Assembly (NCBI GenBank): GCA_950097015.1
Contig: CATNEN010000002.1
Location: 8,060,001 to 8,124,000, forward strand
DNA length: 64,000 nucleotides
From: Macrostomum hystrix
Taxonomy: Eukaryota; Animalia; Platyhelminthes
Direction of reading: 5' to 3'
A model generated the notes under the pieces. The model ran no database searches, was not told the DNA's origin, and saw only the letters and a program-made list of their open reading frames with translations. This document shows positions 16,965-52,007 of this stretch, piece after piece; positions within the stretch are counted from its first letter, which is position 1; each line of letters opens with the position of its first letter. Made by a program: the position numbers and the translations under genes.

Positions 16965-19593
16965 ATGCGGAGTTGAAGCCAGCAAGCAGAAAGACTGACA
17001 CCTGAGAATAGATCCATTTGATCAAACTGTGCAGGGTTTCTGGTCTTGCTGGTGGCAAACTCTGCAGAAGCATCTGCCCAACCCCCCACCTCACTACTAA
17101 TTTTATTGTCACTGAAATATGAGAATGAGTTTGCTGTTATTAACTGGCATAAAGTGGATTGATTGCTACATTTCTTATTTTACTATTATTGACTTCTCAA
17201 ATTCAATCTTCCATGCGGAGTTGAAGCCAGCAAGCAGAAAGACTGACACCTGAGAATAGATCCATTTGATCAAACTGTGCAGGGTTTCTGGTCTTGCTGG
17301 TGTCAAACTCTGCAGAAGCATCTGCCCAACCCCCCACCTCACTACTAATTTTATTGTCACTGAAATATGAGAATGAGTTTGCTGTTATTAACTGGCATAA
17401 AGTGGATTGATTGCTACATTTCTTATTTTACTATTATTGACTTCTCAAATTCAATCTTCCATGCGGAGTTGAAGCCAGCAAGCAGAAAGACTGACACCTG
17501 AGAATAGATCCATTTGATCAAACTGTGCAGGGTTTCTGGTCTTGCTGGTGGCAAACTCTGCAGAAGCATCTGCCCAACCCCCACCTCACTACTAATTTTA
17601 TTGTCACTGAAATATGAGAATGAGTTTGCTGTTATTAACTGGCATAAAGTGGATTGATTGCTACATTTCTTATTTTACTATTATTGACTTCTCAAATTCA
17701 ATCTTCCATGCGGAGTTGAAGCCAGCAAGCAGAAAGACTGACACCTGAGAATAGATCCATTTGATCAAACTGTGCAGGGTTTCTGGTCTTGCTGGTGTCA
17801 AACTCTGCAGAAGCATCTGCCCAACCCCCACCTCACTACTAATTTTATTGTCACTGAAATATGAGAATGAGTTTGCTGTTATTAACTGGCATAAAGTGGA
17901 TTGATTGCTACATTTCTTATTTTACTATTATTGACTTCTCAAATTCAATCTTCCATGCGGAGTTGAAGCCAGCAAGCAGAAAGACTGACACCTGAGAATA
18001 GATCCATTTGATCAAACTGTGCAGGGTTTCTGGTCTTGCTGGTGTCAAACTCTGCAGAAGCATCTGCCCAACCCCCCACCTCACTACTAATTTTATTGTC
18101 ACTGAAATATGAGAATGAGTTTGCTGTTATTAACTGGCATAAAGTGGATTGATTGCTACATTTCTTATTTTACTATTATTGACTTCTCAAATTCAATCTT
18201 CCATGCGGAGTTGAAGCCAGCAAGCAGAAAGACTGACACCTGAGAATAGATCCATTTGATCAAACTGTGCAGGGTTTCTGGTCTTGCTGGTGGCAAACTC
18301 TGCAGAAGCATCTGCCCAACCCCCCACCTCACTACTAATTTTATTGTCACTGAAATATGAGAATGAGTTTGCTGTTATTAACTGGCATAAAGTGGATTGA
18401 TTGCTACATTTCTTATTTTACTATTATTGACTTCTCAAATTCAATCTCCCATGCGGAGTTGAAGCCAGCAAGCAGAAAGACTGACACCTGAGAATAGATC
18501 CATTTGATCAAACTGTGCAGGGTTTCTGGTCTTGCTGGTGGCAAACTCTGCAGAAACATCTGCCCAACCCCCCACCTCACTACTGATTTGAATGTCACTG
18601 AAATATGAGAATGAGTTTGCTGTTATTAACTGGCATAAAGTGGATTGATTGCTACATTTCTTATTTTACTATTATTGACTTCTCAAATTCAATCTTCCAT
18701 GCGGAGTTGAAGCCAGCAAGCAGAAAGACTGACACCTGAGAATAGATCCATTTGATCAAACTGTGCAGGGTTTCTGGTCTTGCTGGTGGCAAACTCTGCA
18801 GAAACATCTGCCCAACCCCCCACCTCACTACTGATTTGAATGTCACTGAAATATGAGAATGAGTTTGCTGTTATTAACTGGCATAAAGTGGATTGATTGC
18901 TACATTTCTTATTTTACTATTATTGACTTCTCAAATTCAATCTTCCATGCGGAGTTGAAGCCAGCAAGCAGAAAGACTGACACCTGAGAATAGATCCATT
19001 TGATCAAACTGTGCAGGGTTTCTGGTCTTGCTGGTGTCAAACTCTGCAGAAGCATCTGCCCAACCCCCCACCTCACTACTGATTTGAATGTCACTGAAAT
19101 ATGAGAATGAGTTTGCTGTTATTAACTGGCATAAAGTGGATTGATTGCTACATTTCTTATTTTACTATTATTGACTTCTCAAATTCAATCTTCCATGCGG
19201 AGTTGAAGCCAGCAAGCAGAAAGACTGACACCTGAGAATAGATCCATTTGATCAAACTGTGCAGGGTTTCTGGTCTTGCTGGTGTCAAACTCTGCAGAAG
19301 CATCTGCCCAACCCTCCACCTCACTACTGATTTGAATGTCACTGAAATATGTGAGAATGAGTTTGCTGTTATTAACTGGCATAAAGTGGATTGATTGCTA
19401 CATTTCTTATTTTACTATTATTGACTTCTCAAATTCAATCTTCCATGCGGAGTTGAAGCCAGCAAGCAGAAAGACTGACACCTGAGAATAGATCCATTTG
19501 ATCAAACTGTGCAGGGTTTCTGGTCTTGCTGGTGGCAAACTCTGCAGAAGCATCTGCCCAACCCCCACCTCACTACTAATTTTATTGTCACTG
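16965..19593. repeat. 248-bp satellite, left arm (~10.6 monomers)
   Basis: ATGCGGAGTTGAAGCC recurs every 247-250 bp from 16965. Confidence 0.97.
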
Positions 19594-19977
19594 TGTAACA
19601 GGGCTTGTCTCTCTACTTTTCTCTCTAATGGTAGCGTATCACTCGGCACGAGCGGTTTAACCTTTTAAGGCACTGGCTTACTATTCTCCAGTCTTTGCTG
19701 GGCGTTTTCTGTGGATCAGAGGGTCACAGCCTCAAATAACCAACTCAACACTTTTCTTCTTCAGTAATAGCTTATTTGCTTTTCGCCACACTGGTACGTT
19801 GATTTGTCTCAACTGAATTACACTCGTTTATATACACAAAAGAAAATGTTTGTTAAAGTAAACGAATTTGACAAAATATTTAAAATATGTTACATATAAA
19901 AAATATTTTGCGCATTCAAACAAAAAGCATAGGCACGAATTTGACTTTAAAGAAATAATAAAAGCATCCCTACTACA
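19594..19977 (-). repeat. Gypsy 3' LTR (384 bp)
   Basis: Identical to 25752-26135 except T19795 vs C25953. Confidence 0.97.
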
Positions 19978-19991
19978 ACTTGCCTTCCCTA
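19978..19991 (-). promoter_or_regulatory. Gypsy polypurine tract
   Basis: Minus strand AGGGAAGGCAAGT immediately before the 3' LTR. Confidence 0.7.
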
Positions 19992-20178
19992 AAATAAAAA
20001 TTGAATAAAGCATGAGTGATATTTTTAGTAATAATATTATTTAAGCCGCATGAGTCAATTTTACTTTATGTAGCATCAGGTCACCGTCCTCAGTCCCGTC
20101 GCCTCTGCTTCTTTGCCGATGCTGCTGCCACCGCTGCTGCTGCCGCCGCTGTCACTGCCGCCGCTGCTGCTGCTGCCG

Positions 20179-23100
20179 TCACTGGTAGTGGGAGTACCGC
20201 TTCCTTGGCACAAAGCCATACTTGTTAGGCTTACGCGGTGCCTCCCTGCGATTCGCGACAGGTGTCGGACCTGCTGGCTCATTGATGACTGTAGGCTTTC
20301 TTGGCCGCAGGTTGTACCGCACCTCTCGCCACTGAAGTGGTGCTGCCGTTCCACTGGCTACATCCGCTCGGTCCTCAGCCTCCTCCTCACAGGCTGGTTC
20401 CTCCACAACATCATGGTCTGGTGGTTCAGCTTCAGGTTCTTCTTCGTTATCTTCTTCCGACTCTTCTAACTCTTCCTCCGTTTCCGTTTCAGAATCTTCG
20501 ATAAGTTCTGCCGAACTTCCGGAATCTGTGTCAGAGTCTTCATCAGTTTCTTCAATCTCACTTCCACTTATGTCTGTCTCTTTGCAAGCTCTCCATTGAA
20601 TTCTTTCCTCTTCTGAGTCAGAGCTTTCTTCTTGCTCGATTTCTTGAACTGCCTTTTTCAGAATCTTAGGTTGCACTTCCTTTCTTTTCTGGATCTTCTG
20701 GGCAGTCTCCTGCCTTCCCTTATCTGTTGGTTCTCTCTTCTCCATGTCAGAACTTTCGGGCATGCCCGTGGCTTTGACCGAGTTCGGTACAGGAGTCAGA
20801 TTATTCCGGTGTACCAGCATCATGGCACCGATTAGTTTTCCATTCTCCTCTTTCTGGACTCTGAAAACTGTGTCCGAAAGCTTAGCCAACACTCTGTAAG
20901 AGGCTCTCTTCTTTCGGTGAAATTTATTGCTCTCGTCACCATGCAACTGTGGATTGTTTATCAATACGAGACCGCCGATTGGCACGGCCTTGGTGATCAC
21001 TGTCTCAGCAGCCTGCTCCCGACGGTCTCGCACCTTTTCTAATTTCTTCTGAACCACCTTCTGCATCTCCTCAATTCTTTTAGCATGATCAGCTACATAG
21101 CTAGGATAGTCGTAGTACAATCTGGGCCTTTTGACAACACTGTCTATTGGCAACTCCGCCTCACGTCCGAACAATAGATAATGTGGAGTGAATCCTGTTG
21201 TCTGATTTACACTCGTTCGAACAGCCACTAAAGCTGCTGGGATCAACAGGTCCCAGTCGGAGTGGTCTTTCTCAACTAGACAGGTGATGATGGACTTTAT
21301 CTGACGGTTAAATCTTTCTACAAGGCCGTTGCTTTGCGCATGATATGGCGTCGTGCAGGTATGCTTGATACCATACAATGTACAAAACGCCTGGAACTGA
21401 CGGCTCACAAAAGTTTTCCCGTTGTCAGTGTGGATCCAACGGCACTGACCATACTCGCTAAAAATTCTTTCTTGTAGGAGTTTTATGACTGTGTCCGACT
21501 TTTGATTTCTGATTGGAAATGCAAACGGGAACTTAGTAGTGCTGTCGATGACTGTCAGCACGTACTTGTGTCCTCGTCGGCTTTCTTTAGAAATCGGCCC
21601 AATCAGATCAATGTGTAGGCGATGGAATGCCTCGCACACAGGGAATGTTTGCACCGGTGCCTTCACCTTATTGCCTGCTTTACTCTCGAGGCATGGGATG
21701 CACTCGGCCACATAATTCTCTACAGTAGTAACTAGGCCAGGTTTCCAGAATCGCTCTCGTACCTTTTGTACGGTTTTATCTCGTCCAAGATGTCCTGCTA
21801 AAGGACTGTCATGCAATTCTCGGAGGACCTCTTTTTCTATTCCACTCGGAAGTACTACTTTCCGGGTACCGTCAGTCACGATGGTTAACATTCCATCCTC
21901 AATCTTCATCTGCTCGTATGATTTGATCATCTTTTTCAGCTCGTGGCTAGCCCCTGTAGGTAATTCTGGCCTCAGTATTCCTTGTTCCTTCCACTCAATC
22001 AGGATTTTAACGTCCTGATCCTCTCTCTGTGCAATAACCAGCTGTTCCTTCGTCAGTGGTACTGACAGGAAATCTGTTAATAATTTTCGGCATGCCGTTG
22101 TCTCTTCCAATTCCTCATCTTCGAAATAGTCTCTTGCGTCCACGAAAATTTCATTCGCATCATCATCATCTGTATCGATGCCACTGTCTGTCTGACAGCT
22201 CTGACTCATCATGGCTCGTCCAGTGATTTGACTTTGGTTAATCTTTGCTTCAGAAGCCTCTTTAATTTCCGATGGTCTTCTAGACAAGCTGTCTGCATTG
22301 CTATGCTTAGCTCCGCTTCTATGCTGGATCTCGTACTGAAACTCACTCAACCGTTCGATCCACCTTCCTAAAATACCCTGGGCTTCTGTTTGACGTAGTA
22401 GCCACAGGATCGCTTTGTGGTCGGTACGTGCCAAGAACTTCTTCCCGATCAAATAGAATCGGAAGTGTTTCATACCATCCACCAAGGCGAGCAATTCCTT
22501 TCGTGTTATCGGATATCGTTTTTCAGATTCCGTCATTGCCCTGCTGAAATAGGCGATTGGTCTTTCTACTCCATCTGCCTGGATTTGTCCAAGACAGGCT
22601 CCTATCCTTCCTTCGGATGCATCAGTGTCTAACACCATTTTGACATTTTCATATTCTGAAAATTCGGGATAAGCCAACACATCGGTGGACATCATTTTCT
22701 GTTTTAGAAGTGCAAACGCCTCGTCATGTTTCGAGTTCCATTTCTCCTTAAAGTTCGTTATACCCTTTTTGGTTAACTGAAACAGCGGATGCGCTGCTTC
22801 GGCATAGTCCTTAACGAATCTACAATAGTAGTTGCATAGGCCCAAGAAACTTCTTAATTCCTTGACGTCTTGCGGAGTAGGCCATGATCGGATGGCTTCG
22901 ATTTTGGCCGGATCTGTTCGAATTCCATTTCGGCCTACTATGTGGCCTAGATATTTCAGTTCTTCTTGAAACAGATTACATTTTCTTGGTCTCAATTTCA
23001 GTCCAGCTTCGGATAATCTCCGGAACACTTCTCGTAGGTGACACAGATGTTCATCGAATTCCTTCGAGTAAGTAACGATATCGTCGATGTACGACATCGC

Positions 23101-24624
23101 GAACTTGTGTTGAATGCCGATCAACACAAGGTTCATCAACCTCTGGAAGGTTCCAGGTGCATTTGACAAGCCTTGAGCCATTACTTGGTACTCAAACTGG
23201 CCCCTAGTTAATGTCGAGAATGCCGTCATATGTTTGTGTTCTTCTTTAATTGGGACTTGCCAGTATCCAGAGTTAAGGTCTAAACTGCTGAAATACTGAC
23301 TTCCAGTAAGGTGAGAGAATGTCTCCTGAATATTAGGTAACGGATACGGATAGTACTCCACACGAGAATTCAGTACTCGAAAGTCACTCACGATCCTTAT
23401 TGTACCATCCTTCTTTGGTACTATGACCAAGGGTGTCGAATAGGTGCTATAACATGGCCTAATCAGGTTTTTGGCCAGCATGTCATCAAGCAAATCATCC
23501 ACCTGTTTTTGCAAATGAGGCGGAATTCTGCGAGTCGGTATTCTGACTGGCGTAGTATCTTTAAGAGCAATTTCATGCGTCACCAAATGTGTCAGACCCA
23601 TATCTTGCTCGGTCTGAGAGAACGCTGCTCTGTTCTCTTTCAGCAATTGTATAACTTGTTCCTTTTGTTCCGAATTCATCTCTCCGATGTTAACCTCCTT
23701 GATCCATTCATCAATGTCCTTTGAGGCTTCCTCTCTCTTTACAGCATTGACTTGTCCGGTATTTTGACTCGAATTGATTGAATTAACAAAATAATTCAAG
23801 TTCTTCGCTGTTAATGGCTTGGCATAGCCAATAAGAGCTGCTCCTTTCACTTTGACTTCTCTGTTCTGTTTATTGACTAGTTCTATGACTCCAACTCCTT
23901 CGTTCAAGGTTACTAATGCTGGTACTAGCTCCAGATCATAACCTTTGGCTGCAATATAGCCGTCATTAGTCTCAATCACCATGGGAGTACCGTAATTAGC
24001 TTCGGCATTTTCTCCCAATCGGATTGGCACTTTCAAAGCACTATTCGCTGGTATTGTGATCTGATTCTGGCAATAGACTCGTCGAATTCGAACAGGTAGT
24101 CTTGTGAACTGAATTGGGATGCAGATCCCATCTTTCAGTACCAAGACTCCTTTACTGAAATTGATACCATCACAGTAGTCTGTGAGAAAGTCCATTCCAA
24201 GGATGTCGTCACAGTCGTGGTCACACAGAAGAAATCTTGTCTCAATCTCAATTTCTCCGAACTTCACTTTAAGCATTGCTTCACCTCTAAGTGACACAAC
24301 TGTTCCGTCAAACGTGGTGACTCTCAAATTGCATGGTTCTATCTCGTCGTCACAAACCACTCTCTTCCATGAACTCCTACTTAAGAAGTTGTTTCCGGCT
24401 CCTGTGTCTATCAAAAACATAATATCTCGCTTTCGTATCTTTCCATTCACAATTGCTTCCTGACCTTTCTTGACCGGCTCTGGGATTCTGATCGTCTCAA
24501 TGGGTGACTCACTTTTAATTTCTTTGCTAGCGGCTTTCTGACCTGTTTCACATGGTGTAACTGGTGCTTTCGCATGTGCTTGCATTTTTGCAGTGCTGGG
24601 TGCATACGCATGGTGCTGTCTCAT
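20179..24624 (-). CDS. pol: Gypsy Pol polyprotein (protease, RT, RNase H, integrase); frame open upstream to the slippery site at 24792
   Basis: 1481-aa ORF: FLIDTGA (PR), YPLP / QGLSNAPGTFQR / YIDDI (RT), LDTDAS (RH), HDSPLAGH..CIPC, HIDLIGP, HTDNG, GLVERFN (IN). Confidence 0.96.
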   Translation of the reverse strand: MRQHHAYAPSTAKMQAHAKAPVTPCETGQKAASKEIKSESPIETIRIPEPVKKGQEAIVNGKIRKRDIMFLIDTGAGNNFLSRSSWKRVVCDDEIEPCNLRVTTFDGTVVSLRGEAMLKVKFGEIEIETRFLLCDHDCDDILGMDFLTDYCDGINFSKGVLVLKDGICIPIQFTRLPVRIRRVYCQNQITIPANSALKVPIRLGENAEANYGTPMVIETNDGYIAAKGYDLELVPALVTLNEGVGVIELVNKQNREVKVKGAALIGYAKPLTAKNLNYFVNSINSSQNTGQVNAVKREEASKDIDEWIKEVNIGEMNSEQKEQVIQLLKENRAAFSQTEQDMGLTHLVTHEIALKDTTPVRIPTRRIPPHLQKQVDDLLDDMLAKNLIRPCYSTYSTPLVIVPKKDGTIRIVSDFRVLNSRVEYYPYPLPNIQETFSHLTGSQYFSSLDLNSGYWQVPIKEEHKHMTAFSTLTRGQFEYQVMAQGLSNAPGTFQRLMNLVLIGIQHKFAMSYIDDIVTYSKEFDEHLCHLREVFRRLSEAGLKLRPRKCNLFQEELKYLGHIVGRNGIRTDPAKIEAIRSWPTPQDVKELRSFLGLCNYYCRFVKDYAEAAHPLFQLTKKGITNFKEKWNSKHDEAFALLKQKMMSTDVLAYPEFSEYENVKMVLDTDASEGRIGACLGQIQADGVERPIAYFSRAMTESEKRYPITRKELLALVDGMKHFRFYLIGKKFLARTDHKAILWLLRQTEAQGILGRWIERLSEFQYEIQHRSGAKHSNADSLSRRPSEIKEASEAKINQSQITGRAMMSQSCQTDSGIDTDDDDANEIFVDARDYFEDEELEETTACRKLLTDFLSVPLTKEQLVIAQREDQDVKILIEWKEQGILRPELPTGASHELKKMIKSYEQMKIEDGMLTIVTDGTRKVVLPSGIEKEVLRELHDSPLAGHLGRDKTVQKVRERFWKPGLVTTVENYVAECIPCLESKAGNKVKAPVQTFPVCEAFHRLHIDLIGPISKESRRGHKYVLTVIDSTTKFPFAFPIRNQKSDTVIKLLQERIFSEYGQCRWIHTDNGKTFVSRQFQAFCTLYGIKHTCTTPYHAQSNGLVERFNRQIKSIITCLVEKDHSDWDLLIPAALVAVRTSVNQTTGFTPHYLLFGREAELPIDSVVKRPRLYYDYPSYVADHAKRIEEMQKVVQKKLEKVRDRREQAAETVITKAVPIGGLVLINNPQLHGDESNKFHRKKRASYRVLAKLSDTVFRVQKEENGKLIGAMMLVHRNNLTPVPNSVKATGMPESSDMEKREPTDKGRQETAQKIQKRKEVQPKILKKAVQEIEQEESSDSEEERIQWRACKETDISGSEIEETDEDSDTDSGSSAELIEDSETETEEELEESEEDNEEEPEAEPPDHDVVEEPACEEEAEDRADVASGTAAPLQWREVRYNLRPRKPTVINEPAGPTPVANRREAPRKPNKYGFVPRKRYSHYQ

Positions 24625-24718
24625 TTCTCGCGGCTGATTAAACTTGTTGAAATAATAATTATTTTTCTTGTAAGCAAAACGTTGGTTATCAATTTTATAC
24701 GCACTATTTACAAACTCT

Positions 24719-24792
24719 GAGGCCTGGAATTTGTTAAAGGATTTTCCGGAGGAACGGGGCCTCGACTTACGTCCCTCGTATTTTAGTTTCCC
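24719..24792 (-). promoter_or_regulatory. -1 programmed ribosomal frameshift signal: G GGA AAC heptamer plus predicted H-type pseudoknot
   Basis: Heptamer 24792-24786 is in the gag frame directly before TAA; the pol frame is -1 and stop-free from there to ATG 24624. 8-nt spacer; stem 1 GAGGGACG/CGTTCCTC; stem 2 GAGGCC/GGCCTC. Confidence 0.8.
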
Positions 24793-25691
24793 TGGTTCTG
24801 GAAGTTCTGCTGACCGTTGCCCATCCTCATAGGACAGAATCTGGCAATATGGCCGAGTTTTCCGCAGTTGAAGCAGGTTCGGTTCTGGTTCAAGAATTGC
24901 GGCCCATTGTACTGCGTATTCTGCTGTTGCAGGAACTTAGGTACATATGGCTTCCTTGGTACGTACTGTTTCTCAGCCATTTTGCTGGTGAGCTCCTGCA
25001 AGAGTTTCTGCTGTCTTTCAATTTCTTCCTTCTGCTTCACAATTGTTGCCCTTAGAGACTCCTCTTCCTCTTCACCATTTCTGGTAATCCTTACTCCGGC
25101 ACCTTTGTGTGTCATGCTCCAGGCGGCTTCCAACCTTCTAAGCATTCTCTTTAGTTCCTGTAGATTGGCAGGCTGAGCAAAGATTAGTTTCTCCCTCATG
25201 TCAGCGGATATCTTGGCTCCCTTGATGTATTGCTCAACCAGTTCATCTTCTCGTTGCTCCATTGTCATGTTTGGGAAGGCTCTGGCAGCCAGTTCAATCA
25301 GACTATCTGAATAGGCTTCTACCGATTCATTCTTGCCTTGCATTCTTCCTCGAAACTCTTCTCTGAATTCTGCTGGGCTTCCAGTTCGTCCGAATCTTTC
25401 TGCCATCCGCTCCTTGAATTCTTCGTAGTCAAGGTTTTCTGGGAGGTTCATTCTCTGTACAGAGGCAAATACTGTGGACAAGTCCAAGTTGGCAAGCAAT
25501 TCCTGCTTTCGATGGTCCACATCAATTCCTTCTGTCTCGCATCTTTGATCAAATGCGGTGAGCCACACCCGAATATCCTGATTAGGTGTGAACTTTTGGA
25601 TCTTCACATGGCGTGTTGGAGCAATCTCCAACCGATTTCTCAGCTCTTCCGCGAGTACAGCCATCAAATCTTGTACTTGAGCTTGATCCAT
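24783..25691 (-). CDS. gag: Gypsy Gag with CCHC zinc knuckle
   Basis: 302-aa ORF; CFNCGKLGHIARFC; retrotransposon capsid-like region (RGRMQGKNESVEAY..L..LA). Confidence 0.93.
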   Translation of the reverse strand: MDQAQVQDLMAVLAEELRNRLEIAPTRHVKIQKFTPNQDIRVWLTAFDQRCETEGIDVDHRKQELLANLDLSTVFASVQRMNLPENLDYEEFKERMAERFGRTGSPAEFREEFRGRMQGKNESVEAYSDSLIELAARAFPNMTMEQREDELVEQYIKGAKISADMREKLIFAQPANLQELKRMLRRLEAAWSMTHKGAGVRITRNGEEEEESLRATIVKQKEEIERQQKLLQELTSKMAEKQYVPRKPYVPKFLQQQNTQYNGPQFLNQNRTCFNCGKLGHIARFCPMRMGNGQQNFQNQGN

Positions 25692-25735
25692 TGTTACTCC
25701 TCAATGGGGTTATTTCGCTGTTTCTCTGATCCTTT

Positions 25736-25747
25736 CCGCTGCCACCA
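25736..25747 (-). promoter_or_regulatory. Primer binding site, tRNA-Leu
   Basis: TGGTGGCAGCGG, 4 nt from the 5' LTR, is complementary to ...CCGCUGCCACCA, the 3' end of metazoan tRNA-Leu(AAG/TAG) as I recall it. Confidence 0.8.
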
Positions 25748-25751
25748 AAGT

Positions 25752-26135
25752 TGTAACAGGGCTTGTCTCTCTACTTTTCTCTCTAATGGTAGCGTATCAC
25801 TCGGCACGAGCGGTTTAACCTTTTAAGGCACTGGCTTACTATTCTCCAGTCTTTGCTGGGCGTTTTCTGTGGATCAGAGGGTCACAGCCTCAAATAACCA
25901 ACTCAACACTTTTCTTCTTCAGTAATAGCTTATTTGCTTTTCGCCACACTGGCACGTTGATTTGTCTCAACTGAATTACACTCGTTTATATACACAAAAG
26001 AAAATGTTTGTTAAAGTAAACGAATTTGACAAAATATTTAAAATATGTTACATATAAAAAATATTTTGCGCATTCAAACAAAAAGCATAGGCACGAATTT
26101 GACTTTAAAGAAATAATAAAAGCATCCCTACTACA
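25752..26135 (-). repeat. Gypsy 5' LTR (384 bp)
   Basis: TGTAGTAG...TGTTACA on the minus strand; TATA-like TATATAAA at 25992-25985. Confidence 0.97.
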
Positions 26136-29100
26136 ACTGAAATATGAGAATGAGTTTGCTGTTATTAACTGGCATAAAGTGGATTGATTGCTACATTTCT
26201 TATTTTACTATTATTGACTTCTCAAATTCAATCTTCCATGCGGAGTTGAAGCCAGCAAGCAGAAAGACTGACACCTGAGAATAGATCCATTTGATCAAAC
26301 TGTGCAGGGTTTCTGGTCTTGCTGGTGGCAAACTCTGCAGAAGCATCTGCCCAACCCCCCACCTCACTACTGATTTGAATGTCACTGAAATATGAGAATG
26401 AGTTTGCTGTTATTAACTGGCATAAAGTGGATTGATTGCTACATTTCTTATTTTACTATTATTGACTTCTCAAATTCAATCTTCCATGCGGAGTTGAAGC
26501 CAGCAAGCAGAAAGACTGACACCTGAGAATAGATCCATTTGATCAAACTGTGCAGGGTTTCTGGTCTTGCTGGTGGCAAACTCTGCAGAAGCATCTGCCC
26601 AACCCCCCACCTCACTACTAATTTTATTGTCACTGAAATATGAGAATGAGTTTGCTGTTATTAACTGGCATAAAGTGGATTGATTGCTACATTTCTTATT
26701 TTACTATTATTGACTTCTCAAATTCAATCTTCCATGCGGAGTTGAAGCCAGCAAGCAGAAAGACTGACACCTGAGAATAGATCCATTTGATCAAACTGTG
26801 CAGGGTTTCTGGTCTTGCTGGTGTCAAACTCTGCAGAAGCATCTGCCCAACCCCCACCTCACTACTAATTTTATTGTCACTGAAATATGAGAATGAGTTT
26901 GCTGTTATTAACTGGCATAAAGTGGATTGATTGCTACATTTCTTATTTTACTATTATTGACTTCTCAAATTCAATCTTCCATGCGGAGTTGAAGCCAGCA
27001 AGCAGAAAGACTGACACCTGAGAATAGATCCATTTGATCAAACTGTGCAGGGTTTCTGGTCTTGCTGGTGTCAAACTCTGCAGAAGCATCTGCCCAACCC
27101 CCACCTCACTACTAATTTTATTGTCACTGAAATATGAGAATGAGTTTGCTGTTATTAACTGGCATAAAGTGGATTGATTGCTACATTTCTTATTTTACTA
27201 TTATTGACTTCTCAAATTCAATCTTCCATGCGGAGTTGAAGCCAGCAAGCAGAAAGACTGACACCTGAGAATAGATCCATTTGATCAAACTGTGCAGGGT
27301 TTCTGGTCTTGCTGGTGGCAAACTCTGCAGAAACATCTGCCCAACCCCCCACCTCACTACTGATTTGAATGTCACTGAAATATGAGAATGAGTTTGCTGT
27401 TATTAACTGGCATAAAGTGGATTGATTGCTACATTTCTTATTTTACTATTATTGACTTCTCAAATTCAATCTTCCATGCGGAGTTGAAGCCAGCAAGCAG
27501 AAAGACTGACACCTGAGAATAGATCCATTTGATCAAACTGTGCAGGGTTTCTGGTCTTGCTGGTGGCAAACTCTGCAGAAGCATCTGCCCAACCCCCCAC
27601 CTCACTACTGATTTGAATGTCACTGAAATATGAGAATGAGTTTGCTGTTATTAACTGGCATAAAGTGGATTGATTGCTACATTTCTTATTTTACTATTAT
27701 TGACTTCTCAAATTCAATCTTCCATGCGGAGTTGAAGCCAGCAAGCAGAAAGACTGACACCTGAGAATAGATCCATTTGATCAAACTGTGCAGGGTTTCT
27801 GGTCTTGCTGGTGGCAAACTCTGCAGAAGCATCTGCCCAACCCCCCACCTCACTACTAATTTTATTGTCACTGAAATATGAGAATGAGTTTGCTGTTATT
27901 AACTGGCATAAAGTGGATTGATTGCTACATTTCTTATTTTACTATTATTGACTTCTCAAATTCAATCTTCCATGCGGAGTTGAAGCCAGCAAGCAGAAAG
28001 ACTGACACCTGAGAATAGATCCATTTGATCAAACTGTGCAGGGTTTCTGGTCTTGCTGGTGTCAAACTCTGCAGAAGCATCTGCCCAACCCCCACCTCAC
28101 TACTAATTTTATTGTCACTGAAATATGAGAATGAGTTTGCTGTTATTAACTGGCATAAAGTGGATTGATTGCTACATTTCTTATTTTACTATTATTGACT
28201 TCTCAAATTCAATCTTCCATGCGGAGTTGAAGCCAGCAAGCAGAAAGACTGACACCTGAGAATAGATCCATTTGATCAAACTGTGCAGGGTTTCTGGTCT
28301 TGCTGGTGTCAAACTCTGCAGAAGCATCTGCCCAACCCCCACCTCACTACTAATTTTATTGTCACTGAAATATGAGAATGAGTTTGCTGTTATTAACTGG
28401 CATAAAGTGGATTGATTGCTACATTTCTTATTTTACTATTATTGACTTCTCAAATTCAATCTTCCATGCGGAGTTGAAGCCAGCAAGCAGAAAGACTGAC
28501 ACCTGAGAATAGATCCATTTGATCAAACTGTGCAGGGTTTCTGGTCTTGCTGGTGGCAAACTCTGCAGAAACATCTGCCCAACCCCCCACCTCACTACTG
28601 ATTTGAATGTCACTGAAATATGAGAATGAGTTTGCTGTTATTAACTGGCATAAAGTGGATTGATTGCTACATTTCTTATTTTACTATTATTGACTTCTCA
28701 AATTCAATCTTCCATGCGGAGTTGAAGCCAGCAAGCAGAAAGACTGACACCTGAGAATAGATCCATTTGATCAAACTGTGCAGGGTTTCTGGTCTTGCTG
28801 GTGGCAAACTCTGCAGAAGCATCTGCCCAACCCCCCACCTCACTACTAATTTTATGTCACTGAAATATGAGAATGAGTTTGCTGTTATTAACTGGCATAA
28901 AGTGGATTGATTGCTACATTTCTTATTTTACTATTATTGACTTCTCAAATTCAATCTTCCATGCGGAGTTGAAGCCAGCAAGCAGAAAGACTGACACCTG
29001 AGAATAGATCCATTTGATCAAACTGTGCAGGGTTTCTGGTCTTGCTGGTGGCAAACTCTGCAGAAAGCATCTGCCCAACCCCCCACCTCACTACTGATTT

Positions 29101-38100: not shown

Positions 38101-41100
38101 ATTATTGACTTCTCAAATTCAATCTTCCATGCGGAGTGAAGCCAGCAAGCAGAAAGACTGACACCTGAGAATAGATCCATTTGATCAAACTGTGCAGGGT
38201 TTCTGGTCTTGCTGGTGGCAAACTCTGCAGAAGCATCTGCCCAACCCCCCACCTCACTACTGATTTGAATGTCACTGAAATATGAGAATGAGTTTGCTGT
38301 TATTAACTGGCATAAAGTGGATTGATTGCTACATTTCTTATTTTACTATTATTGACTTCTCAAATTCAATCTTCCATGCGGAGTTGAAGCCAGCAAGCAG
38401 AAAGACTGACACCTGAGAATAGATCCATTTGATCAAACTGTGCAGGGTTTCTGGTCTTGCTGGTGGCAAACTCTGCAGAAGCATCTGCCCAACCCCCCAC
38501 CTCACTACTGATTTGAATGTCACTGAAATATGAGAATGAGTTTGCTGTTATTAACTGGCATAAAGTGGATTGATTGCTACATTTCTTATTTTACTATTAT
38601 TGACTTCTCAAATTCAATCTTCCATGCGGAGTTGAAGCCAGCAAGCAGAAAGACTGACACCTGAGAATAGATCCATTTGATCAAACTGTGCAGGGTTTCT
38701 GGTCTTGCTGGTGGCAAACTCTGCAGAAGCATCTGCCCAACCCCCCACCTCACTACTGATTTGAATGTCACTGAAATATGAGAATGAGTTTGCTGTTATT
38801 AACTGGCATAAAGTGGATTGATTGCTACATTTCTTATTTTACTATTATTGACTTCTCAAATTCAATCTTCCATGCGGAGTTGAAGCCAGCAAGCAGAAAG
38901 ACTGACACCTGAGAATAGATCCATTTGATCAAACTGTGCAGGGTTTCTGGTCTTGCTGGTGGCAAACTCTGCAGAAGCATCTGCCCAACCCCCCACCTCA
39001 CTACTGATTTGAATTGTCACTGAAATATGAGAATGAGTTTGCTGTTATTAACTGGCATAAAGTGGATTGATTGCTACATTTCTTATTTTACTATTATTGA
39101 CTTCTCAAATTCAATCTTCCCATGCGGAGTTGAAGCCAGCAAGCAGAAAGACTGACACCTGAGAATAGATCCATTTGATCAAACTGTGCAGGGTTTCTGG
39201 TCTTGCTGGTGGCAAACTCTGCAGAAAGCATCTGCCCAACCCCCACCTCACTACTAATTTTATTGTCACTGAAATATGAGAATGAGTTTGCTGTTATTAA
39301 CTGGCATAAAGTGGATTGATTGCTACATTTCTTATTTTACTATTATTGACTTCTCAAATTCAATCTTCCATGCGGAGTTGAAGCCAGCAAGCAGAAAGAC
39401 TGACACCTGAGAATAGATCCATTTGATCAAACTGTGCAGGGTTTCTGGTCTTGCTGGTGTCAAACTCTGCAGAAGCATCTGCCCAACCCTCCACCTCACT
39501 ACTGAATTTGAATGTCACTGAAATATGAGAATGAGTTTGCTGTTATTAACTGGCATAAAGTGGATTGATTGCTACATTTCTTATTTTACTATTATTGACT
39601 TCTCAAATTCAATCTTCCATGCGGAGTTGAAGCCAGCAAGCAGAAAGACTGACACCTGAGAATAGATCCATTTGATCAAACTGTGCAGGGTTTCTGGTCT
39701 TGCTGGTGGCAAACTCTGCAGAAGCATCTGCCCAACCCCCCACCTCACTACTGAATTTGAATGTCACTGAAATATGAGAATGAGTTTGCTGTTATTAACT
39801 GGCATAAAGTGGATTGATTGCTACATTTCTTATTTTACTATTATTGACTTCTCAAATTCAATCTTCCATGCGGAGTTGAAGCCAGCAAGCAGAAAGACTG
39901 ACACCTGAGAATAGATCCATTTGATCAAACTGTGCAGGGTTTCTGGTCTTGCTGGTGGCAAACTCTGCAGAAGCATCTGCCCAACCCCCCACCTCACTAC
40001 TGATTTGAATGTCACTGAAATATGAGAATGAGTTTGCTGTTATTAACTGGCATAAAGTGGATTGATTGCTACATTTCTTATTTTACTATTATTGACTTCT
40101 CAAATTCAATCTTCCATGCGGAGTTGAAGCCAGCAAGCAGAAAGACTGACACCTGAGAATAGATCCATTTGATCAAACTGTGCAGGGTTTCTGGTCTTGC
40201 TGGTGGCAAACTCTGCAGAAGCATCTGCCCAACCCCCCACCTCACTACTGATTTGAATGTCACTGAAATATGAGAATGAGTTTGCTGTTATTAACTGGCA
40301 TAAAGTGGATTGATTGCTACATTTCTTATTTTACTATTATTGACTTCTCAAATTCAATCTTCCATGCGGAGTTGAAGCCAGCAAGCAGAAAGACTGACAC
40401 CTGAGAATAGATCCATTTGATCAAACTGTGCAGGGTTTCTGGTCTTGCTGGTGTCAAACTCTGCAGAAGCATCTGCCCAACCCCCACCTCACTACTGATT
40501 TGAATGTCACTGAAATATGAGAATGAGTTTGCTGTTATTAACTGGCATAAAGTGGATTGATTGCTACATTTCTTATTTTACTATTATTGACTTCTCAAAT
40601 TCAATCTTCCATGCGGAGTTGAAGCCAGCAAGCAGAAAGACTGACACCTGAGAATAGATCCATTTGATCAAACTGTGCAGGGTTTCTGGTCTTGCTGGTG
40701 GCAAACTCTGCAGAAGCATCTGCCCAACCCCCACCTCACTACTGATTTGAATGTCACTGAAATATGAGAATGAGTTTGCTGTTATTAACTGGCATAAAGT
40801 GGATTGATTGCTACATTTCTTATTTTACTATTATTGACTTCTCAAATTCAATCTTCCATGCGGAGTTGAAGCCAGCAAGCAGAAAGACTGACACCTGAGA
40901 ATAGATCCATTTGATCAAACTGTGCAGGGTTTCTGGTCTTGCTGGTGGCAAACTCTGCAGAAGCATCTGCCCAACCCCCCACCTCACTACTGATTTGAAT
41001 GTCACTGAAATATGAGAATGAGTTTGCTGTTATTAACTGGCATAAAGTGGATTGATTGCTACATTTCTTATTTTACTATTATTGACTTCTCAAATTCAAT

Positions 41101-44100
41101 CTTCCATGCGGAGTTGAAGCCAGCAAGCAGAAAGACTGACACCTGAGAATAGATCCATTTGATCAAACTGTGCAGGGTTTCTGGTCTTGCTGGTGGCAAA
41201 CTCTGCAGAAGCATCTGCCCAACCCCCCACCTCACTACTGATTTGAATGTCACTGAAATATGAGAATGAGTTTGCTGTTATTAACTGGCATAAAGTGGAT
41301 TGATTGCTACATTTCTTATTTTACTATTATTGACTTCTCAAATTCAATCTTCCATGCGGAGTTGAAGCCAGCAAGCAGAAAGACTGACACCTGAGAATAG
41401 ATCCATTTGATCAAACTGTGCAGGGTTTCTGGTCTTGCTGGTGTCAAACTCTGCAGAAGCATCTGCCCAACCCCCACCTCACTACTAGATTTGAATTGTC
41501 ACTGAAATATGAGAATGAGTTTGCTGTTATTAACTGGCATAAAGTGGATTGATTGCTACATTTCTTATTTTACTATTATTGACTTCTCAAATTCAATCTT
41601 CCATGCGGAGTTGAAGCCAGCAAGCAGAAAGACTGACACCTGAGAATAGATCCATTTGATCAAACTGTGCAGGGTTTCTGGTCTTGCTGGTGTCAAACTC
41701 TGCAGAAGCATCTGCCCAACCCCCCACCTCACTACTGATTTGAATGTCACTGAAATATGAGAATGAGTTTGCTGTTATTAACTGGCATAAAGTGGATTGA
41801 TTGCTACATTTCTTATTTTACTATTATTGACTTCTCAAATTCAATCTTCCATGCGGAGTTGAAGCCAGCAAGCAGAAAGACTGACACCTGAGAATAGATC
41901 CATTTGATCAAACTGTGCAGGGTTTCTGGTCTTGCTGGTGTCAAACTCTGCAGAAGCATCTGCCCAACCCCCACCTCACTACTGATTTGAATGTCACTGA
42001 AATATTGAGAATGAGTTTGCTGTTATTAACTGGCATAAAGTGGATTGATTGCTACATTTCTTATTTTACTATTATTGACTTCTCAAATTCAATCTTCCAT
42101 GCGGAGTTGAAGCCAGCAAGCAGAAAGACTGACACCTGAGAATAGATCCATTTGATCAAACTGTGCAGGGTTTCTGGTCTTGCTGGTGGCAAACTCTGCA
42201 GAAGCATCTGCCCAACCCCCACCTCACTACTGAATTTGAATGTCACTGAAATATGAGAATGAGTTTGCTGTTATTAACTGGCATAAAGTGGATTGATTGC
42301 TACATTTCTTATTTTACTATTATTGACTTCTCAAATTCAATCTTCCATGCGGAGTTGAAGCCAGCAAGCAGAAAGACTGACACCTGAGAATAGATCCATT
42401 TGATCAAACTGTGCAGGGTTTCTGGTCTTGCTGGTGGCAAACTCTGCAGAAGCATCTGCCCAACCCCCACCTCACTACTAATTTTATTGTCACTGAAATA
42501 TGAGAATGAGTTTGCTGTTATTAACTGGCATAAAGTGGATTGATTGCTACATTTCTTATTTTACTATTATTGACTTCTCAATTCAATCTTCCATGCGGAG
42601 TTGAAGCCAGCAAGCAGAAAGACTGACACCTGAGAATAGATCCATTTGATCAAACTGTGCAGGGTTTCTGGTCTTGCTGGTGGCAAACTCTGCAGAAGCA
42701 TCTGCCCAACCCCCCACCTCACTACTAATTTTATATGTCACTGGAAATATGAGAATGAGTTTGCTGTTATTAACTGGCATAAAGTGGATTGATTGCTACA
42801 TTTCTTATTTTACTATTATTGACTTCTCAAATTCAATCTTCCATGCGGAGTTGAAGCCAGCAAGCAGAAAGACTGACACCTGAGAATAGATCCATTTGAT
42901 CAAACTGTGCAGGGTTTCTGGTCTTGCTGGTGGCAAACTCTGCAGAAGCATCTGCCCAACCCCCACCTCACTACTAATTTTATTGTCACTGAATATGAGA
43001 ATGAGTTTGCTGTTATTAACTGGCATAAAGTGGATTGATTGCTACATTTCTTATTTTACTATTATTGACTTCTCAAATTCAATCTTCCATGCGGAGTTGA
43101 AGCCAGCAAGCAGAAGACTGACACCTGAGAATAGATCCATTTGATCAAACTGTGCAGGGTTTCTGTCTTGCTGGTGTCAAACTCTGCAGAAGCATCTGCC
43201 CAACCCCCACCTCACTACTAATTTTATTGTCACTGAAATATGAGAATGAGTTTGCTGTTATTAACTGCATAAAGTGGATTGATTGCTACATTTCTTATTT
43301 TACTATTATTGACTTCTCAAATTCAATCTCCCATGCGGAGTTGAAGCCAGCAAGCAGAAAGACTGACACCTGAGAATAGATCCATTTGATCAAACTGTGC
43401 AGGGTTTCTGGTCTTGCTGGTGGCAAACTCTGCAGAAGCATCTGCCCAACCCCCCACCTCACTACTAATTTTATTGTCACTGAAATATGAGAATGAGTTT
43501 GCTGTTATTAACTGGCATAAAGTGGATTGATTGCTACATTTCTTATTTTACTATTATTGACTTCTCAAATTCAATCTTCCATGCGGAGTTGAAGCCAGCA
43601 AGCAGAAAGACTGACACCTGAGAATAGATCCATTTGATCAAACTGTGCAGGGTTTCTGGTCTTGCTGGTGTCAAACTCTGCAGAAGCATCTGCCCAACCC
43701 CCACCTCACTACTAATTTTATTGTCACTGAAATATGAGAATGAGTTTGCTGTTATTAACTGGCATAAAGTGGATTGATTGCTACATTTCTTATTTTACTA
43801 TTATTGACTTCTCAAATTCAATCTTCCATGCGGAGTTGAAGCCAGCAAGCAGAAAGACTGACACCTGAGAATAGATCCATTTGATCAAACTGTGCAGGGT
43901 TTCTGGTCTTGCTGGTGGCAAACTCTGCAGAAGCATCTGCCCAACCCCCACCTCACTACTAATTTTATTGTCACTGAAATATGAGAATGAGTTTGCTGTT
44001 ATTAACTGGCATAAAGTGGATTGATTGCTACATTTCTTATTTTACTATTATTGACTTCTCAAATTCAATCTTCCATGCGGAGTTGAAGCCAGCAAGCAGA

Positions 44101-48500: not shown

Positions 48501-49147
48501 TCTAATATACTAAAAATGAAAATCTTGCTTGCTTGCTTGTCCACTATACTAAAAATGAAATGGTTGGTTGGTTGGTTGGTTGGTTGTAATTGATTTTCTC
48601 CCGAACGGCTCAACCGATTTTCACTATTTCTTCACCAAAAGATGCCAAATATAGAGACAATTTTACACACATTTTTATTAAGCTTAACTTTATTGCTAAG
48701 AGGATTAAATATTCGAAAAACATGATTTTTTCAAAGGTCAAACCATCTTGGCCTATTGAGAATTTCACTCACTGCCACTGAATTGAAATTGCATCGTCAA
48801 ATTGCGCAACAACCCCTAGCTGATTGAATTTGAAGCCTGCACTCTGGAGACAAATTGGAAATAAATGTACACAACCAACCGTGAGACTGAGTGTACTCTA
48901 TTTTCTTACTTCATTGTACAAAGCCAGAACTTTGAGAATTCATTTTATAAGGCTGATTTCTGCACCCACTAACCAACAGTCGGAATAGCCGATGTGTTAG
49001 GCACTAGGAATAAGTTAGGCATGGCTAGGCTTCGATTCTGCACTGCGTCAAATCATTTAGACTAATTTTCAGCCAGTAGTGATTGAAGATTATTTTTATT
49101 TATTTTTTTCATTTCGTTAATAAAATATCATAAATCATAGCAAATCT

Positions 49148-50630: not shown

Positions 50631-50657
50631 TGGCTAACCCAGCGTTTGAAAAATCAA

Positions 50658-51914: not shown

Positions 51915-52007
51915 AGCTTTAAAAAGCTGTAAATTTAGCTGCTAAAAAGTCTATACTAGACGAATTAAAAGTATTTCTGCTCCCCGAAGGGGGGCAAATC
52001 TTGCTAG

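Follow-up and report, generated by a model that had tools for sequence, protein, structure and literature searches.

The long terminal repeats (LTRs) of a Ty3/gypsy element in the flatworm Macrostomum hystrix contain, in predicted U5, an antisense module whose match to host tRNA-Leu is real and far above chance. The best explanation, for which we see roughly even chances, is that the module is a fragmented antisense copy of nt 1–57 of the element's own primer, kept for extended primer-template pairing. More tentatively, and at somewhat below even chances, we propose that this lineage reverse-transcribed its own primer into U5 and keeps the pieces so that nearly all of the primer can be paired, its 5′ two-thirds by the module and its 3′ end by the primer-binding site (PBS). 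Contact between the element RNA and its primer probably extends well past the customary 12–18 bases. Comparison with related elements indicates that the module, far from being an oddity of one element, is a cis element present across a whole clade of flatworm Ty3/gypsy elements.

The window, the whole stretch of 64,000 nucleotides that we analyzed, holds the element carrying the module, which is young and intact. It lies on the minus strand at 19594–26135, inserted within a 248-bp satellite unit, and its LTRs of 384 bp each are one base apart. The element shows the hallmarks of Metaviridae (Ty3/gypsy), namely paired LTRs with TG...CA termini, a target site duplication, a PBS, and a polypurine tract, and its Pfam matches follow the Ty3/gypsy domain order (RVT_1, 5e-35; RT_RNaseH, 2e-30; rve, 7e-17), with zf-CCHC in gag. 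Four public sequencing runs contain the element, all four as DNA-like unitigs. Its parts are as follows.

26136–26139, with partner 19590–19593, no strand: target site duplication ACTG, read from the sequence
19594–19977, minus strand: 3′ LTR with a second copy of the module at 19630–19705, found as a direct repeat
19978–19990, minus strand: polypurine tract adjoining the 3′ LTR, read from the sequence
20179–24624, minus strand: pol open reading frame (ORF), 1481 aa, with protease, reverse transcriptase (RT), RNase H, and integrase (ORF and Pfam)
24783–25691, minus strand: gag ORF, 302 aa, with Retrotrans_gag and zinc knuckle domains (ORF and Pfam)
25736–25747, minus strand: PBS, 12 nt, complementing the last 9 nt plus CCA of host tRNA-Leu(AAG/TAG), compared with the host tRNA
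25748–25751: spacer of 4 nt between the PBS and the LTR end
25752–26135, minus strand: 5′ LTR, 384 bp with TG...CA ends, a direct repeat of 19594–19977 with the sole difference at 25953
25929–25992, minus strand: predicted TATA box (25992–25987), initiator-like TCAGTT (25974–25969), and AATAAG (25934–25929), as motif matches only

On the element strand the PBS reads TGGTGGCAGCGG. The positions of the predicted TATA box, initiator, and AATAAG, which are motif matches only, place the module in U5.

A preliminary description of this DNA had reported collinear antisense tRNA-Leu blocks in both LTRs (25788–25863 and 19630–19705), using a vertebrate tRNA-Leu. The + strand sequence that it gave is exact in both LTRs, and the blocks were confirmed by alignment to host tRNA genes, namely a tRNA-Leu(AAG) gene at L014:1501–1580 with two identical copies and a tRNA-Leu(TAG) gene at L036:1501–1580 from the same genome. 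The vertebrate tRNA departs from the host tRNA in the anticodon stem and variable loop. The PBS belongs to the same tRNA as the module, as had been claimed. Six collinear blocks in the 76-nt module match host tRNA-Leu on the + strand and cover 44 of the first 57 tRNA nt; the description of the module as a copy of most of the primer holds to this extent and fails for the T arm, of which the module contains no recognizable copy. The module and its blocks are these.

25788–25863, minus strand: antisense tRNA-Leu module in predicted U5, 36–111 nt from the LTR end, by alignment to host tRNA
25788–25795, minus strand: block 1, complement of tRNA nt 1–8 (acceptor-stem 5′ strand and U8), kept in all families
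25803–25805, minus strand: block 2, complement of tRNA nt 9–11, in the D stem/D loop region with block 3
25807–25814, minus strand: block 3, complement of tRNA nt 12–19, exact for AAG and with one G·U for TAG
25824–25834, minus strand: block 4, complement of tRNA nt 21–31, with A for G26 (U·G in RNA)
25844–25851, minus strand: block 5, complement of tRNA nt 39–46, exact for TAG and 7/8 for AAG
25858–25863, minus strand: block 6, complement of tRNA nt 52–57 (variable arm, 3′ side), by alignment to host tRNA

Blocks 2 and 3 together (25803–25814) represent the D stem and D loop, with a single extra base at 25806 between them. Block 4 spans the D loop, the D-stem 3′ strand, position 26, and the anticodon-stem 5′ strand, and it sets a U opposite G26, so that the internal mismatch is indeed the U·G wobble that had been anticipated. 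Block 5 spans the anticodon-stem 3′ strand and the beginning of the variable arm.

Local alignment of the module to the tRNA scored 42–43, as against 18.6 ± 2.7 (maximum 36.5) for 1000 dinucleotide shuffles of the LTR and at most 34.5 for other 384-nt chunks of the window compared with tRNA-Leu. The predicted module:tRNA duplex reached −73 to −76 kcal/mol, compared with −36 ± 4.5 for shuffles. The complementarity lies outside the PBS and concerns parts of the primer other than its 3′ 18 nt, as defines an extended primer-binding element. We ruled out a tRNA gene or pseudogene and a tRNA-derived SINE head, as neither ARAGORN, which found no tRNA in the whole 64-kb window, nor the Rfam tRNA model (RF00005), which gave no match to the LTR, yielded a cloverleaf.

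At least 12 LTR families in the host genome carry the module, as do two relatives in Macrostomum lignano. Two of the elements (L071 and L076) were chosen via their PBS without regard to the module and the two from M. lignano (L108, with 71% pol identity, and L109, with 50%) via pol homology, and all four carry it. Block columns were more often identical to the window's module than spacer columns were, with 41/43 against 25/33 in family B, 43/43 against 23/33 in C, 35/43 against 17/33 in D, 37/43 against 17/33 in E, and 34/43 against 15/33 in M. lignano L108 (Fisher p values from 0.015 to 1e-4). This contrast mostly persisted after the two pattern-ascertained blocks were dropped. Among the 32 copies of family A, variants common to at least two copies fell only in spacers or flanks, with 0 in 43 block positions; shared variants alone were used, private mutations being too few and confounded by truncated copies. 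Two other measures were rejected, a cheap-gap global alignment of each family to the tRNA, which over-fits, and a 4-mer chain comparison, which is noisy (null about 21/60); in their place we compared the identity of blocks and of spacers to the copy in the window and matched the blocks in order by a fuzzy search. In the fuzzy matching, the matches in R_L084 and M. lignano were partly misplaced and were ignored.

The preliminary description had predicted that host tRNA-Leu would match the boxes and that these would be conserved while spacers diverge. Host tRNA-Leu does match, and the boxes are far better conserved in related LTR families and in a second species. Comparison across families shows the signature of purifying selection that maintains the tRNA-identical blocks while the spacers drift, the conserved-motif pattern of extended primer-binding elements, in which same-primer relatives keep the blocks. 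On the tRNA-sense strand, every counted family-level block substitution is G>A or T>C, which corresponds to C>U or A>G in the RNA of the element, and tRNA pairing is therefore retained as G·U. The base opposite G26 is U in all host-genome families that keep block 4 (groups 1 and 2). These two groups also have in common an extra A between nt 11 and 12, the G26>A change, and a spacer after nt 8; the layout of the M. lignano copies differs from both. Only blocks 1 and 3, the two that the search pattern required, can be recognized in the most divergent families (types H, I, O, and G).

In all module families with a readable PBS, this site is of the Leu(AAG/TAG) type. The PBS of family E, read as Leu(CAG), had appeared to mismatch the module; this reading was rejected, as it concerned an inner relic unit, and the outer PBS in L071 is Leu(AAG/TAG). 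Other Leu-primed LTR families that were sampled gave lower scores, and at least one (L068/L070) lacks the module, which is thus not required for Leu priming as such. A further locus, C2:3661620–3662420, had no similarity to tRNA-Leu.

The region around U5 and the PBS also has predicted structure of its own, which involves two further segments.

25871–25889, minus strand: conserved U5 segment, not tRNA-like, from comparison of relatives and folding
25722–25730, minus strand: leader strand of a U5-leader stem, from folding, with 5 nt (25731–25735) between it and the PBS

The module could be a structural cis element that acts independently of the tRNA through its own 5′-UTR fold (PBS masking, packaging, dimerization, or nucleocapsid binding), its tRNA identity being a legacy of its origin; we consider this unlikely. 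The predicted self-fold of 25715–25900 (minus strand) has an energy of −53.2 kcal/mol (z = −3.0), with every block in a stem and the anti-acceptor block paired with the PBS. By this prediction, the boxes would be hidden by the folding of the free element RNA. A predicted 9-bp U5-leader stem (25871–25879 with 25722–25730) closes the PBS domain, and its variants in relatives are all G·U on the element-sense strand. In family B, a hairpin changes from CUCG/CGAG to CUUG/CAAG, a compensated change with a G·U intermediate in L051, which indicates that the constraint on the block is at least partly intramolecular. Against a purely structural role, RNAalifold on the two family groups gave hardly any shared structure (−5.3 and −1.6 kcal/mol), and from group to group the blocks retain their identity to the tRNA while the spacers that partner them vary in both sequence and length. 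The D-loop block never changes, even in families with a different local hairpin partner for it, and the tRNA pairing survives all family-level block changes.

How the module arose bears on a second alternative. Its probable origin is the mature primer, copied into cDNA. RT would run on into the primer in the course of plus-strand strong-stop synthesis, and the resulting copy would join U5 once a new U5-end/PBS unit further downstream came into use. Stacked [U5-end + PBS] units are present in the LTRs of relatives, and six other LTR families carry 40–56-nt copies of the 3′ part of tRNA-Leu that end in CCA. The first tRNA positions in them are nt 28, 38, 39, 41, 41, and 44, and in four of these families A58 itself is altered. 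The modified bases m1A58, m1G37, and m2,2G26 are reverse-transcription blocks or miscoding sites. On primers, m1A58 has been described as a reverse-transcription stop (PMC8599865). Within the element, we also considered an internal duplication, with 25864–25925 as an older copy of the [PBS + U5 end] at 25730–25787, and rejected it as not significant (score 17, p about 0.03–0.08).

The module might then be a neutral fossil of primer read-through, a functionless passenger in U5, which we judge improbable. Primer read-through copies are common in the host genome, and the stacked PBS relics in relatives, the decay of the T-arm/old-PBS part past recognition, and the Leu-primed family without a module are all in keeping with such a fossil. 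It is harder to reconcile with blocks that are near-intact in families whose spacers are unalignable and whose pol is 50–71% identical. The derived features shared by groups 1 and 2 point to one old copy instead of repeated fresh captures, and a neutral sequence this old would be expected to show decay like that of the spacers.

A role in small-RNA biology, in which the module would either be a decoy that draws off 5′ fragments or halves of tRNA-Leu or be targeted by host silencing, appears very improbable. The complementarity to the 5′ part of the tRNA is real, and 3′ tRNA fragments target PBS sequences (PMC7472051, PMC12853362). However, an element should lose a host target site, not conserve it, and the interrupted layout offers no contiguous 18–22 nt, its longest block being 11 nt; the sponge that the preliminary description had suggested is without support in the present analysis. 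Least credible is a tRNA-derived module that serves on the antisense strand as a pol III promoter or insulator, comparable to Helenus/TRIMp3. All families conserve a string that resembles an A box, T-G-(G)-C-A-C-G-A-G-C-G-G, and tRNA-like LTRs with pol III boxes exist (PMC10886601), but there is no B box in the unrecognizable T-arm region, the A box contains an insertion, the Rfam tRNA model finds no match, the orientation opposes the element's own transcription, and the element is autonomous with a predicted TATA-type promoter.

If the module is kept for extended pairing with the primer, initiation might proceed as follows. In free genomic RNA, the 9-bp U5-leader stem would close the PBS domain, with the anti-acceptor block on the PBS and the remaining blocks in small hairpins. 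Annealing of tRNA-Leu by nucleocapsid would split the acceptor stem, whose 3′ strand would join the PBS and whose 5′ strand would join the anti-acceptor block, and the D arm, anticodon stem, and variable-arm base would open onto blocks 2–6. The outcome would be an interrupted duplex of about 44 bp beside the 12-bp PBS duplex, which would keep the primer in an open state and make priming more specific to tRNA-Leu, and which could offset the short PBS of this family. The spacers lie opposite tRNA loops and junctions. Block changes limited to G·U and the U opposite G26 fit RNA–RNA pairing on the element-sense strand. Native tRNA modifications (e.g., at positions 9, 10, 26, and 37) may hinder pairing. 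The best RNAcofold structure put the tRNA 3′ end on a weak upstream site rather than on the PBS; the program is unable to represent the module and PBS duplexes together because their pairs cross. The preliminary description's reading of the blocks as pairing with the primer gains partial support from the host match, box conservation, and G·U-compatible changes; physical pairing is predicted from duplex energies, and an effect on RT initiation is proposed.

To our knowledge, none of the retroviral U5–primer motifs copies the primer almost completely in antisense. Additional contacts between primer and template have been described in Ty1, Ty3, HIV-1, FIV, and RSV (PMC5371799). As in Ty1 (boxes 0, 1, and 2.1 to the T and D arms of tRNAiMet) and Ty3 (a bipartite PBS, with D and T arms to U3), conserved RNA outside the PBS complements the same primer, including its D arm (PMC5371799). 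The Ty1 and Ty3 boxes are 6–8 nt long and directed to the T and D arms, whereas the module has six blocks that cover 44/57 nt and include the whole acceptor-stem 5′ strand, the anticodon stem, and the variable arm. The module also lies upstream in U5, whereas Ty1 boxes lie downstream of the PBS and the Ty3 contact is in U3; and it is clearly homologous to the tRNA, whereas those contacts are short complementary motifs. The predicted contact of the module resembles those of HIV-1 (PAS/anti-PAS and A-rich loop) and RSV (U5-TpsiC), in which U5 motifs located upstream of the PBS bind the primer and are hidden in free RNA, but the retroviral motifs are single stretches of 7–8 nt to the TpsiC arm or the anticodon loop (PMC5371799). 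The retroviral U5-leader stem that closes the PBS domain (RSV; also the U5-IR stem) has its counterpart in the predicted 9-bp stem described above.

tRNA-derived sequence in LTRs is known from other settings. Partial similarity to a tRNA is seen in quite a few LTRs in Repbase, and the non-autonomous elements Helenus/TRIMp3 (and Cassandra) have tRNA- or 5S-derived sequence in the LTR, with the tRNA-derived part in both LTRs as here (PMC10886601). Helenus elements are TRIMs below 1.3 kb, in contrast to the present 6.5-kb autonomous gypsy element with gag and pol intact, and their tRNA part keeps boxes A and B, is said to be a pol III promoter for template RNA, and is not linked to the primer tRNA in that paper (PMC10886601). 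Its sense orientation is presumed by us, the paper leaving orientation unstated. The module, in contrast, is antisense, has an unrecognizable B box and an interrupted A box, and derives from the element's own primer. Membership in Helenus/TRIMp3 was rejected, given the coding capacity, the antisense orientation, and the missing recognizable B box. The preliminary description had mentioned neither these tRNA-like LTRs nor the clade-wide age of the module and its likely origin from primer cDNA.

Two further comparisons concern primer-derived sequence itself. Primer read-through or long-PBS copies, such as the 3′ tRNA-Leu copies with CCA and the A58 change in other host-genome families, are contiguous with the PBS and lie downstream in the leader, whereas the module corresponds to the 5′ portion of the tRNA and is located upstream of the PBS, within the LTR. 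In the half-tRNA priming of copia and Ty5, element RNA likewise complements an internal or 5′ part of the tRNA (PMC5371799), but there the complementarity is the PBS itself and abuts the LTR; here a normal 3′-end PBS abuts the LTR, and the 5′-part complement lies at least 36 nt inside U5. Literature searches on tRNA or PBS features of Macrostomum LTR elements, and on a histone stem-loop in LTR elements, returned nothing relevant.

Primer tRNA selection and unfolding by retroelements are only partly understood, and the known extra primer contacts are short and were found one at a time by mutagenesis. In this lineage, the contact surface can be read straight from the sequence because it is homologous to the primer, and at least 12 natural variants in one genome, with more in a second species, form a comparative series on which parts of the primer must be held. 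The module also calls for caution in annotation, since tRNA-like matches in LTRs are not necessarily pol III promoters. If the proposed pairing is true, it would be the most extensive primer-template contact known, and it would illustrate, in a natural case, one way in which the extra boxes of Ty1, Ty3, HIV-1, and RSV may have originated, by capture of primer cDNA followed by erosion of the parts that are unable to pair, such as loops with modified bases.

We searched the window's own genome (220 Mb, 42 contigs) for host tRNA genes by pattern and BLAST, and found tRNA-Leu with AAG in three identical genes, TAG in one and CAG in several. Leu(AAG) and Leu(TAG) have identical 3' ends, hence the same primer-binding site (PBS) complement. 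The + strand at 25788-25863, an LTR segment here called the module (second copy 19630-19705), reads collinearly as tRNA nucleotides 1-8, 9-11, 12-19, 21-31, 39-46 and 52-57 (blocks 1-6, block 1 being anti-acceptor), with fillers of 7, 1, 9, 9 and 6 nt between them. The blocks cover 44 of the first 57 nucleotides. The D-loop block is exact to Leu(AAG) and the anticodon-stem block to Leu(TAG), and all in-block differences from Leu(TAG) are G.U pairs in RNA, including the A that replaces G26 in block 4. Local alignment scored 42-43. None of 1000 LTR shuffles with dinucleotides preserved reached this (18.6 ± 2.7, maximum 36.5), nor did any other 384-nt stretch of the window. For a duplex between the module and tRNA nucleotides 1-60 the predicted energy is -73 to -76 kcal/mol, where shuffles give -36 ± 4.5. 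The preliminary description had reported antisense tRNA-Leu blocks in both LTRs, a PBS for the same tRNA and one internal mismatch that would wobble; the blocks and the PBS are confirmed against the host's own tRNA genes. Its broader suggestion was that the genomic RNA could pair with nearly the whole primer. Complementary sequence is present for most of the first 57 nucleotides and for the 3' end, and the module contains no recognisable copy of the T arm.

The LTR bearing the module belongs, as 5' LTR, to an intact minus-strand Ty3/gypsy element (19594-26135) with the following features.

Features of the host element.
19594-19977 and 25752-26135, minus strand: LTRs of 384 bp each, termini TG...CA, single difference at 25953
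19590-19593 and 26136-26139: target-site duplication ACTG, flanking both element ends
25691-24783, minus strand: gag (Retrotrans_gag and zinc knuckle)
24624-20179, minus strand: pol (protease, RT, RNase H, integrase; gypsy order)
25747-25736, element strand: PBS, complementary to the shared 3' end (9 nt plus CCA) of Leu(AAG) and Leu(TAG), 4 bases from the LTR
19978-19990: polypurine tract adjoining the 3' LTR
25992-25987: TATA, motif match
25974-25969: initiator-like TCAGTT, motif match
25934-25929: AATAAG, motif match

The closest pol protein relatives are from the flatworm Macrostomum lignano (71% and 50% identity), and the host is probably a Macrostomum-like flatworm. Because the four public runs that hold the element are all DNA unitigs, the module's predicted placement in U5 rests on the TATA, TCAGTT and AATAAG matches. 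The insertion splits one unit of a 248-bp satellite, which forms long arrays in the window (18500-19593, 26136-27500 and 40000-46785) and whose units are joined head to tail in public DNA runs. Further long tandem arrays, with periods of 23 and 18 nt, lie at 48989-51800.

A loose pattern demanding block 1, a gap of 4-16 nt and block 3 gave 284 genome matches, against 45 with a reversed control, and the fillers were many and varied. Families hand-sampled from representatives of these matches fell into two groups, A (the window's element), B, C, Q and R, and D, E, F, J, K, L, M and N. Blocks 1, 3, 5 and 6 and the cores of 2 and 4 occur in one order in the two groups, which also share an extra A between nucleotides 11 and 12 and an A at position 26. 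Fillers vary in sequence and length (filler 1, 5-13 nt; filler 2, 3-9 nt), and those of the anticodon and variable loops are unalignable between the groups. Three carriers were reached without using the module, loci L071 and L076 by a Leu-PBS search and the M. lignano element L108 by pol homology. In another M. lignano element, L109 (pol 50% identical), a copy of tRNA nucleotides 4-35 lies 8 nt from the LTR end (p < 0.0005). Also in its LTR, at 3823-3850, a heptamer like the acceptor 5' strand is fused to the acceptor 3' strand and CCA, which looks like a "mini-tRNA" copy without its middle. Two elements from invertebrate assemblies (pol 33% identical, 18-nt Leu PBS) showed an 11/12 D-arm match 14 nt from the LTR end that was only marginally significant. 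The remaining sampled Leu-primed LTR families scored lower, at 18-28 with a background near 19; Leu-primed L068/L070, at 23, had no module.

The window holds another LTR, of family type H, read on the minus strand at 51950-52450. Block 1 and a D-loop block lie at 52192-52165. The D-loop block occupies a hairpin loop, and the 5-bp stem below it is unlike the tRNA D stem. A decayed Leu-type PBS adjoins an LTR end, about 200 nt from the blocks. In family C LTRs the element-sense strand has, between module and LTR end, a 3' stem-loop of histone type (Rfam RF00032; L050:174-218 (-), L055:169-214 (-), L052:280-324 (+)), scoring 35.0 bits (gathering score 34) and 31.6 bits. It lies in a 134-nt insert with a block 1 copy on either side. 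Families F, N and Q have degenerate stem-loops of 21-23 bits in the same place, and the weaker matches are L096:382-426, L101:210-251 and L082:314-360. These families may form RNA 3' ends as histone mRNAs do. Some family C LTR pairs are only about 3.7-3.8 kb apart (contig C3, 2243467/2247270 and 12272809/12276520), a spacing that points to non-autonomous members derived from the window's lineage.

We compared identity to the window's module between block and filler columns. This comparison was proposed in the preliminary description, and the boxes were better kept than the spacers in all five cases.

Identity to the window's module.
Family B: blocks 41/43, fillers 25/33
Family C: blocks 43/43, fillers 23/33
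Family D: blocks 35/43, fillers 17/33
Family E: blocks 37/43, fillers 17/33
M. lignano L108: blocks 34/43, fillers 15/33

One-sided Fisher p lay between 0.015 and 1e-4, in a conservative test, since the alignment method is biased towards fillers. The contrast mostly survives dropping blocks 1 and 3, which the pattern demands. Among 32 family A copies, variants found in at least two copies map to fillers and flanks, with none in 43 block positions; one is a clean deletion of the entire anticodon-loop filler. Among family-level in-block changes, T8>C occurs and G26>A is seen everywhere; family B has G>A and T>C in block 3, families D and F have T>C in block 5, and family M has G>A in block 6. 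On the tRNA-sense strand each change is G>A or T>C, thus C>U or A>G in element RNA, which preserves G.U pairing with the tRNA. With transitions taken as twice transversions and 27/43 block bases being G or T, a rough hand estimate puts the chance of 5-6 of 5-6 events being G.U-compatible at ~0.01; the independent events are few. Two other changes, C>T and G>T, are each private to single old copies. All module families with a readable PBS have a Leu(AAG/TAG)-type one, which fits a functional link and also plain common descent. Separate copies L082 and L083 (families F and F') have a common PBS with five C>T changes from the Leu PBS and a TCA end instead of CCA; their blocks are intact, and another F copy (contig C2, 3593572) has an exact PBS. 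This could be a hypermutated yet propagated subfamily, or another primer may be used.

The element RNA has a predicted fold of its own, which also bears on a purely intramolecular role, a reading that we consider unlikely though worth weighing. RNA 25900-25715 (minus strand) has a predicted fold of -53.2 kcal/mol (z = -3.0, 200 shuffles), with a 9-bp stem between U5 (25879-25871) and the leader (25730-25722), five bases past the PBS. The U5 strand of this stem is conserved and not tRNA-like. The 3' part of the PBS is predicted to pair with the anti-acceptor block, and the anti-D and anti-anticodon-stem blocks to form small hairpins with fillers. This resembles, as a predicted fold, retroviral PBS domains, whose primer-contact motifs are masked until tRNA annealing. 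In relatives, the U5-leader stem shows only G.U variants on the element-sense strand, which would be C.A mismatches on the other, and a family B hairpin changes from CUCG/CGAG to CUUG/CAAG with L051 as G.U intermediate. These patterns argue that the functional strand is element-sense RNA and that the constraint is in part intramolecular. RNAalifold found almost no structure common to all families, and the in-block changes keep pairing with the tRNA.

That the module is a neutral fossil is rather improbable beside the block conservation. Copies of the primer elsewhere in the genome bear on the module's origin. Six further non-tRNA BLAST matches of the tRNA, each in a different LTR-element family (L037, L038, L045, L047, L048 and L049, at about 1450-1560 in each locus), are 40-56 nt of the tRNA-Leu 3' part, CCA-terminated and followed directly by an LTR end, so that each looks like an overlong "PBS". 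m1G37 and m2,2G26 are hard stops for reverse transcriptases. The copies begin at nucleotides 28, 38, 39, 41, 41 and 44. In four of them A58 itself is altered (T, G, T, T), and m1A at this position miscodes in or stops reverse transcriptases (PMC8599865). Set against these modification effects, the changes and start points mark the copies as cDNA of the primer in its mature, modified form, produced when it was read through in plus-strand strong-stop synthesis. Stacked units of U5 end, 2-4-nt spacer and Leu PBS occur in LTRs upstream of the working PBS, three in L108 (3960-4495; one a relic, with block 1 also in tandem repeats) and two each in L071, L092 and L094. They show that a downstream PBS can take over and the older PBS region become U5, and U5 seems to grow this way in the clade. 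Full primer read-through followed by takeover would leave U5 with the entire tRNA in antisense; the old PBS and T arm would then be obliged to decay, avoiding internal priming. This is the module's presumed origin. The fillers face the 8/9 junction, D loop, anticodon loop and variable loop, presumably sites with bases unable to pair or miscoding. The duplication expected from takeover was not found in the U5 of the window's element.

A small-RNA decoy or target, for which the antisense complementarity might serve, is very improbable, and an antisense pol III element scarcely credible, tRNA finders making no call on the module region. In Helenus/TRIMp3, short non-autonomous elements with tRNA-derived sequence in their LTRs, pol III boxes A and B are the element's own promoter, and no connection to the primer tRNA was drawn (PMC10886601). 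Tested for each defining trait (short, non-autonomous, box A and B promoter), the window's element showed none. Ty1 (T and D arms), Ty3, HIV-1, FIV and RSV are established cases of extra primer-template contacts; the Ty3 PBS is bipartite, and the D arm pairs in U3 (PMC5371799). The module, known from sequence and predicted pairing, is likened to these in mode of action. It differs in three ways: it is larger (44 nt in six collinear blocks), its targets are the 5' acceptor strand and D arm together with the anticodon stem and variable arm, and its homology to the primer is visible. We found no description of an antisense primer copy in U5 in the open-access literature.

Extended primer-template pairing through the module is the reading we favour, with about as much confidence as doubt. 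The sequences show the PBS and the conserved blocks, and a self-fold of the element RNA is predicted; that the tRNA unfolds onto the blocks is our inference. Annealing would split the tRNA-Leu acceptor stem, its 3' strand going to the PBS and its 5' strand to the anti-acceptor block; the D arm, anticodon stem and variable-arm base would then open onto blocks 2-6, with fillers bulging out. As far as these sequences tell, the module is a feature of the whole clade. The primer would thereby be held unfolded and specificity added, and the extra pairing would perhaps offset the short 12-nt PBS of family A (18 nt in families B and D).
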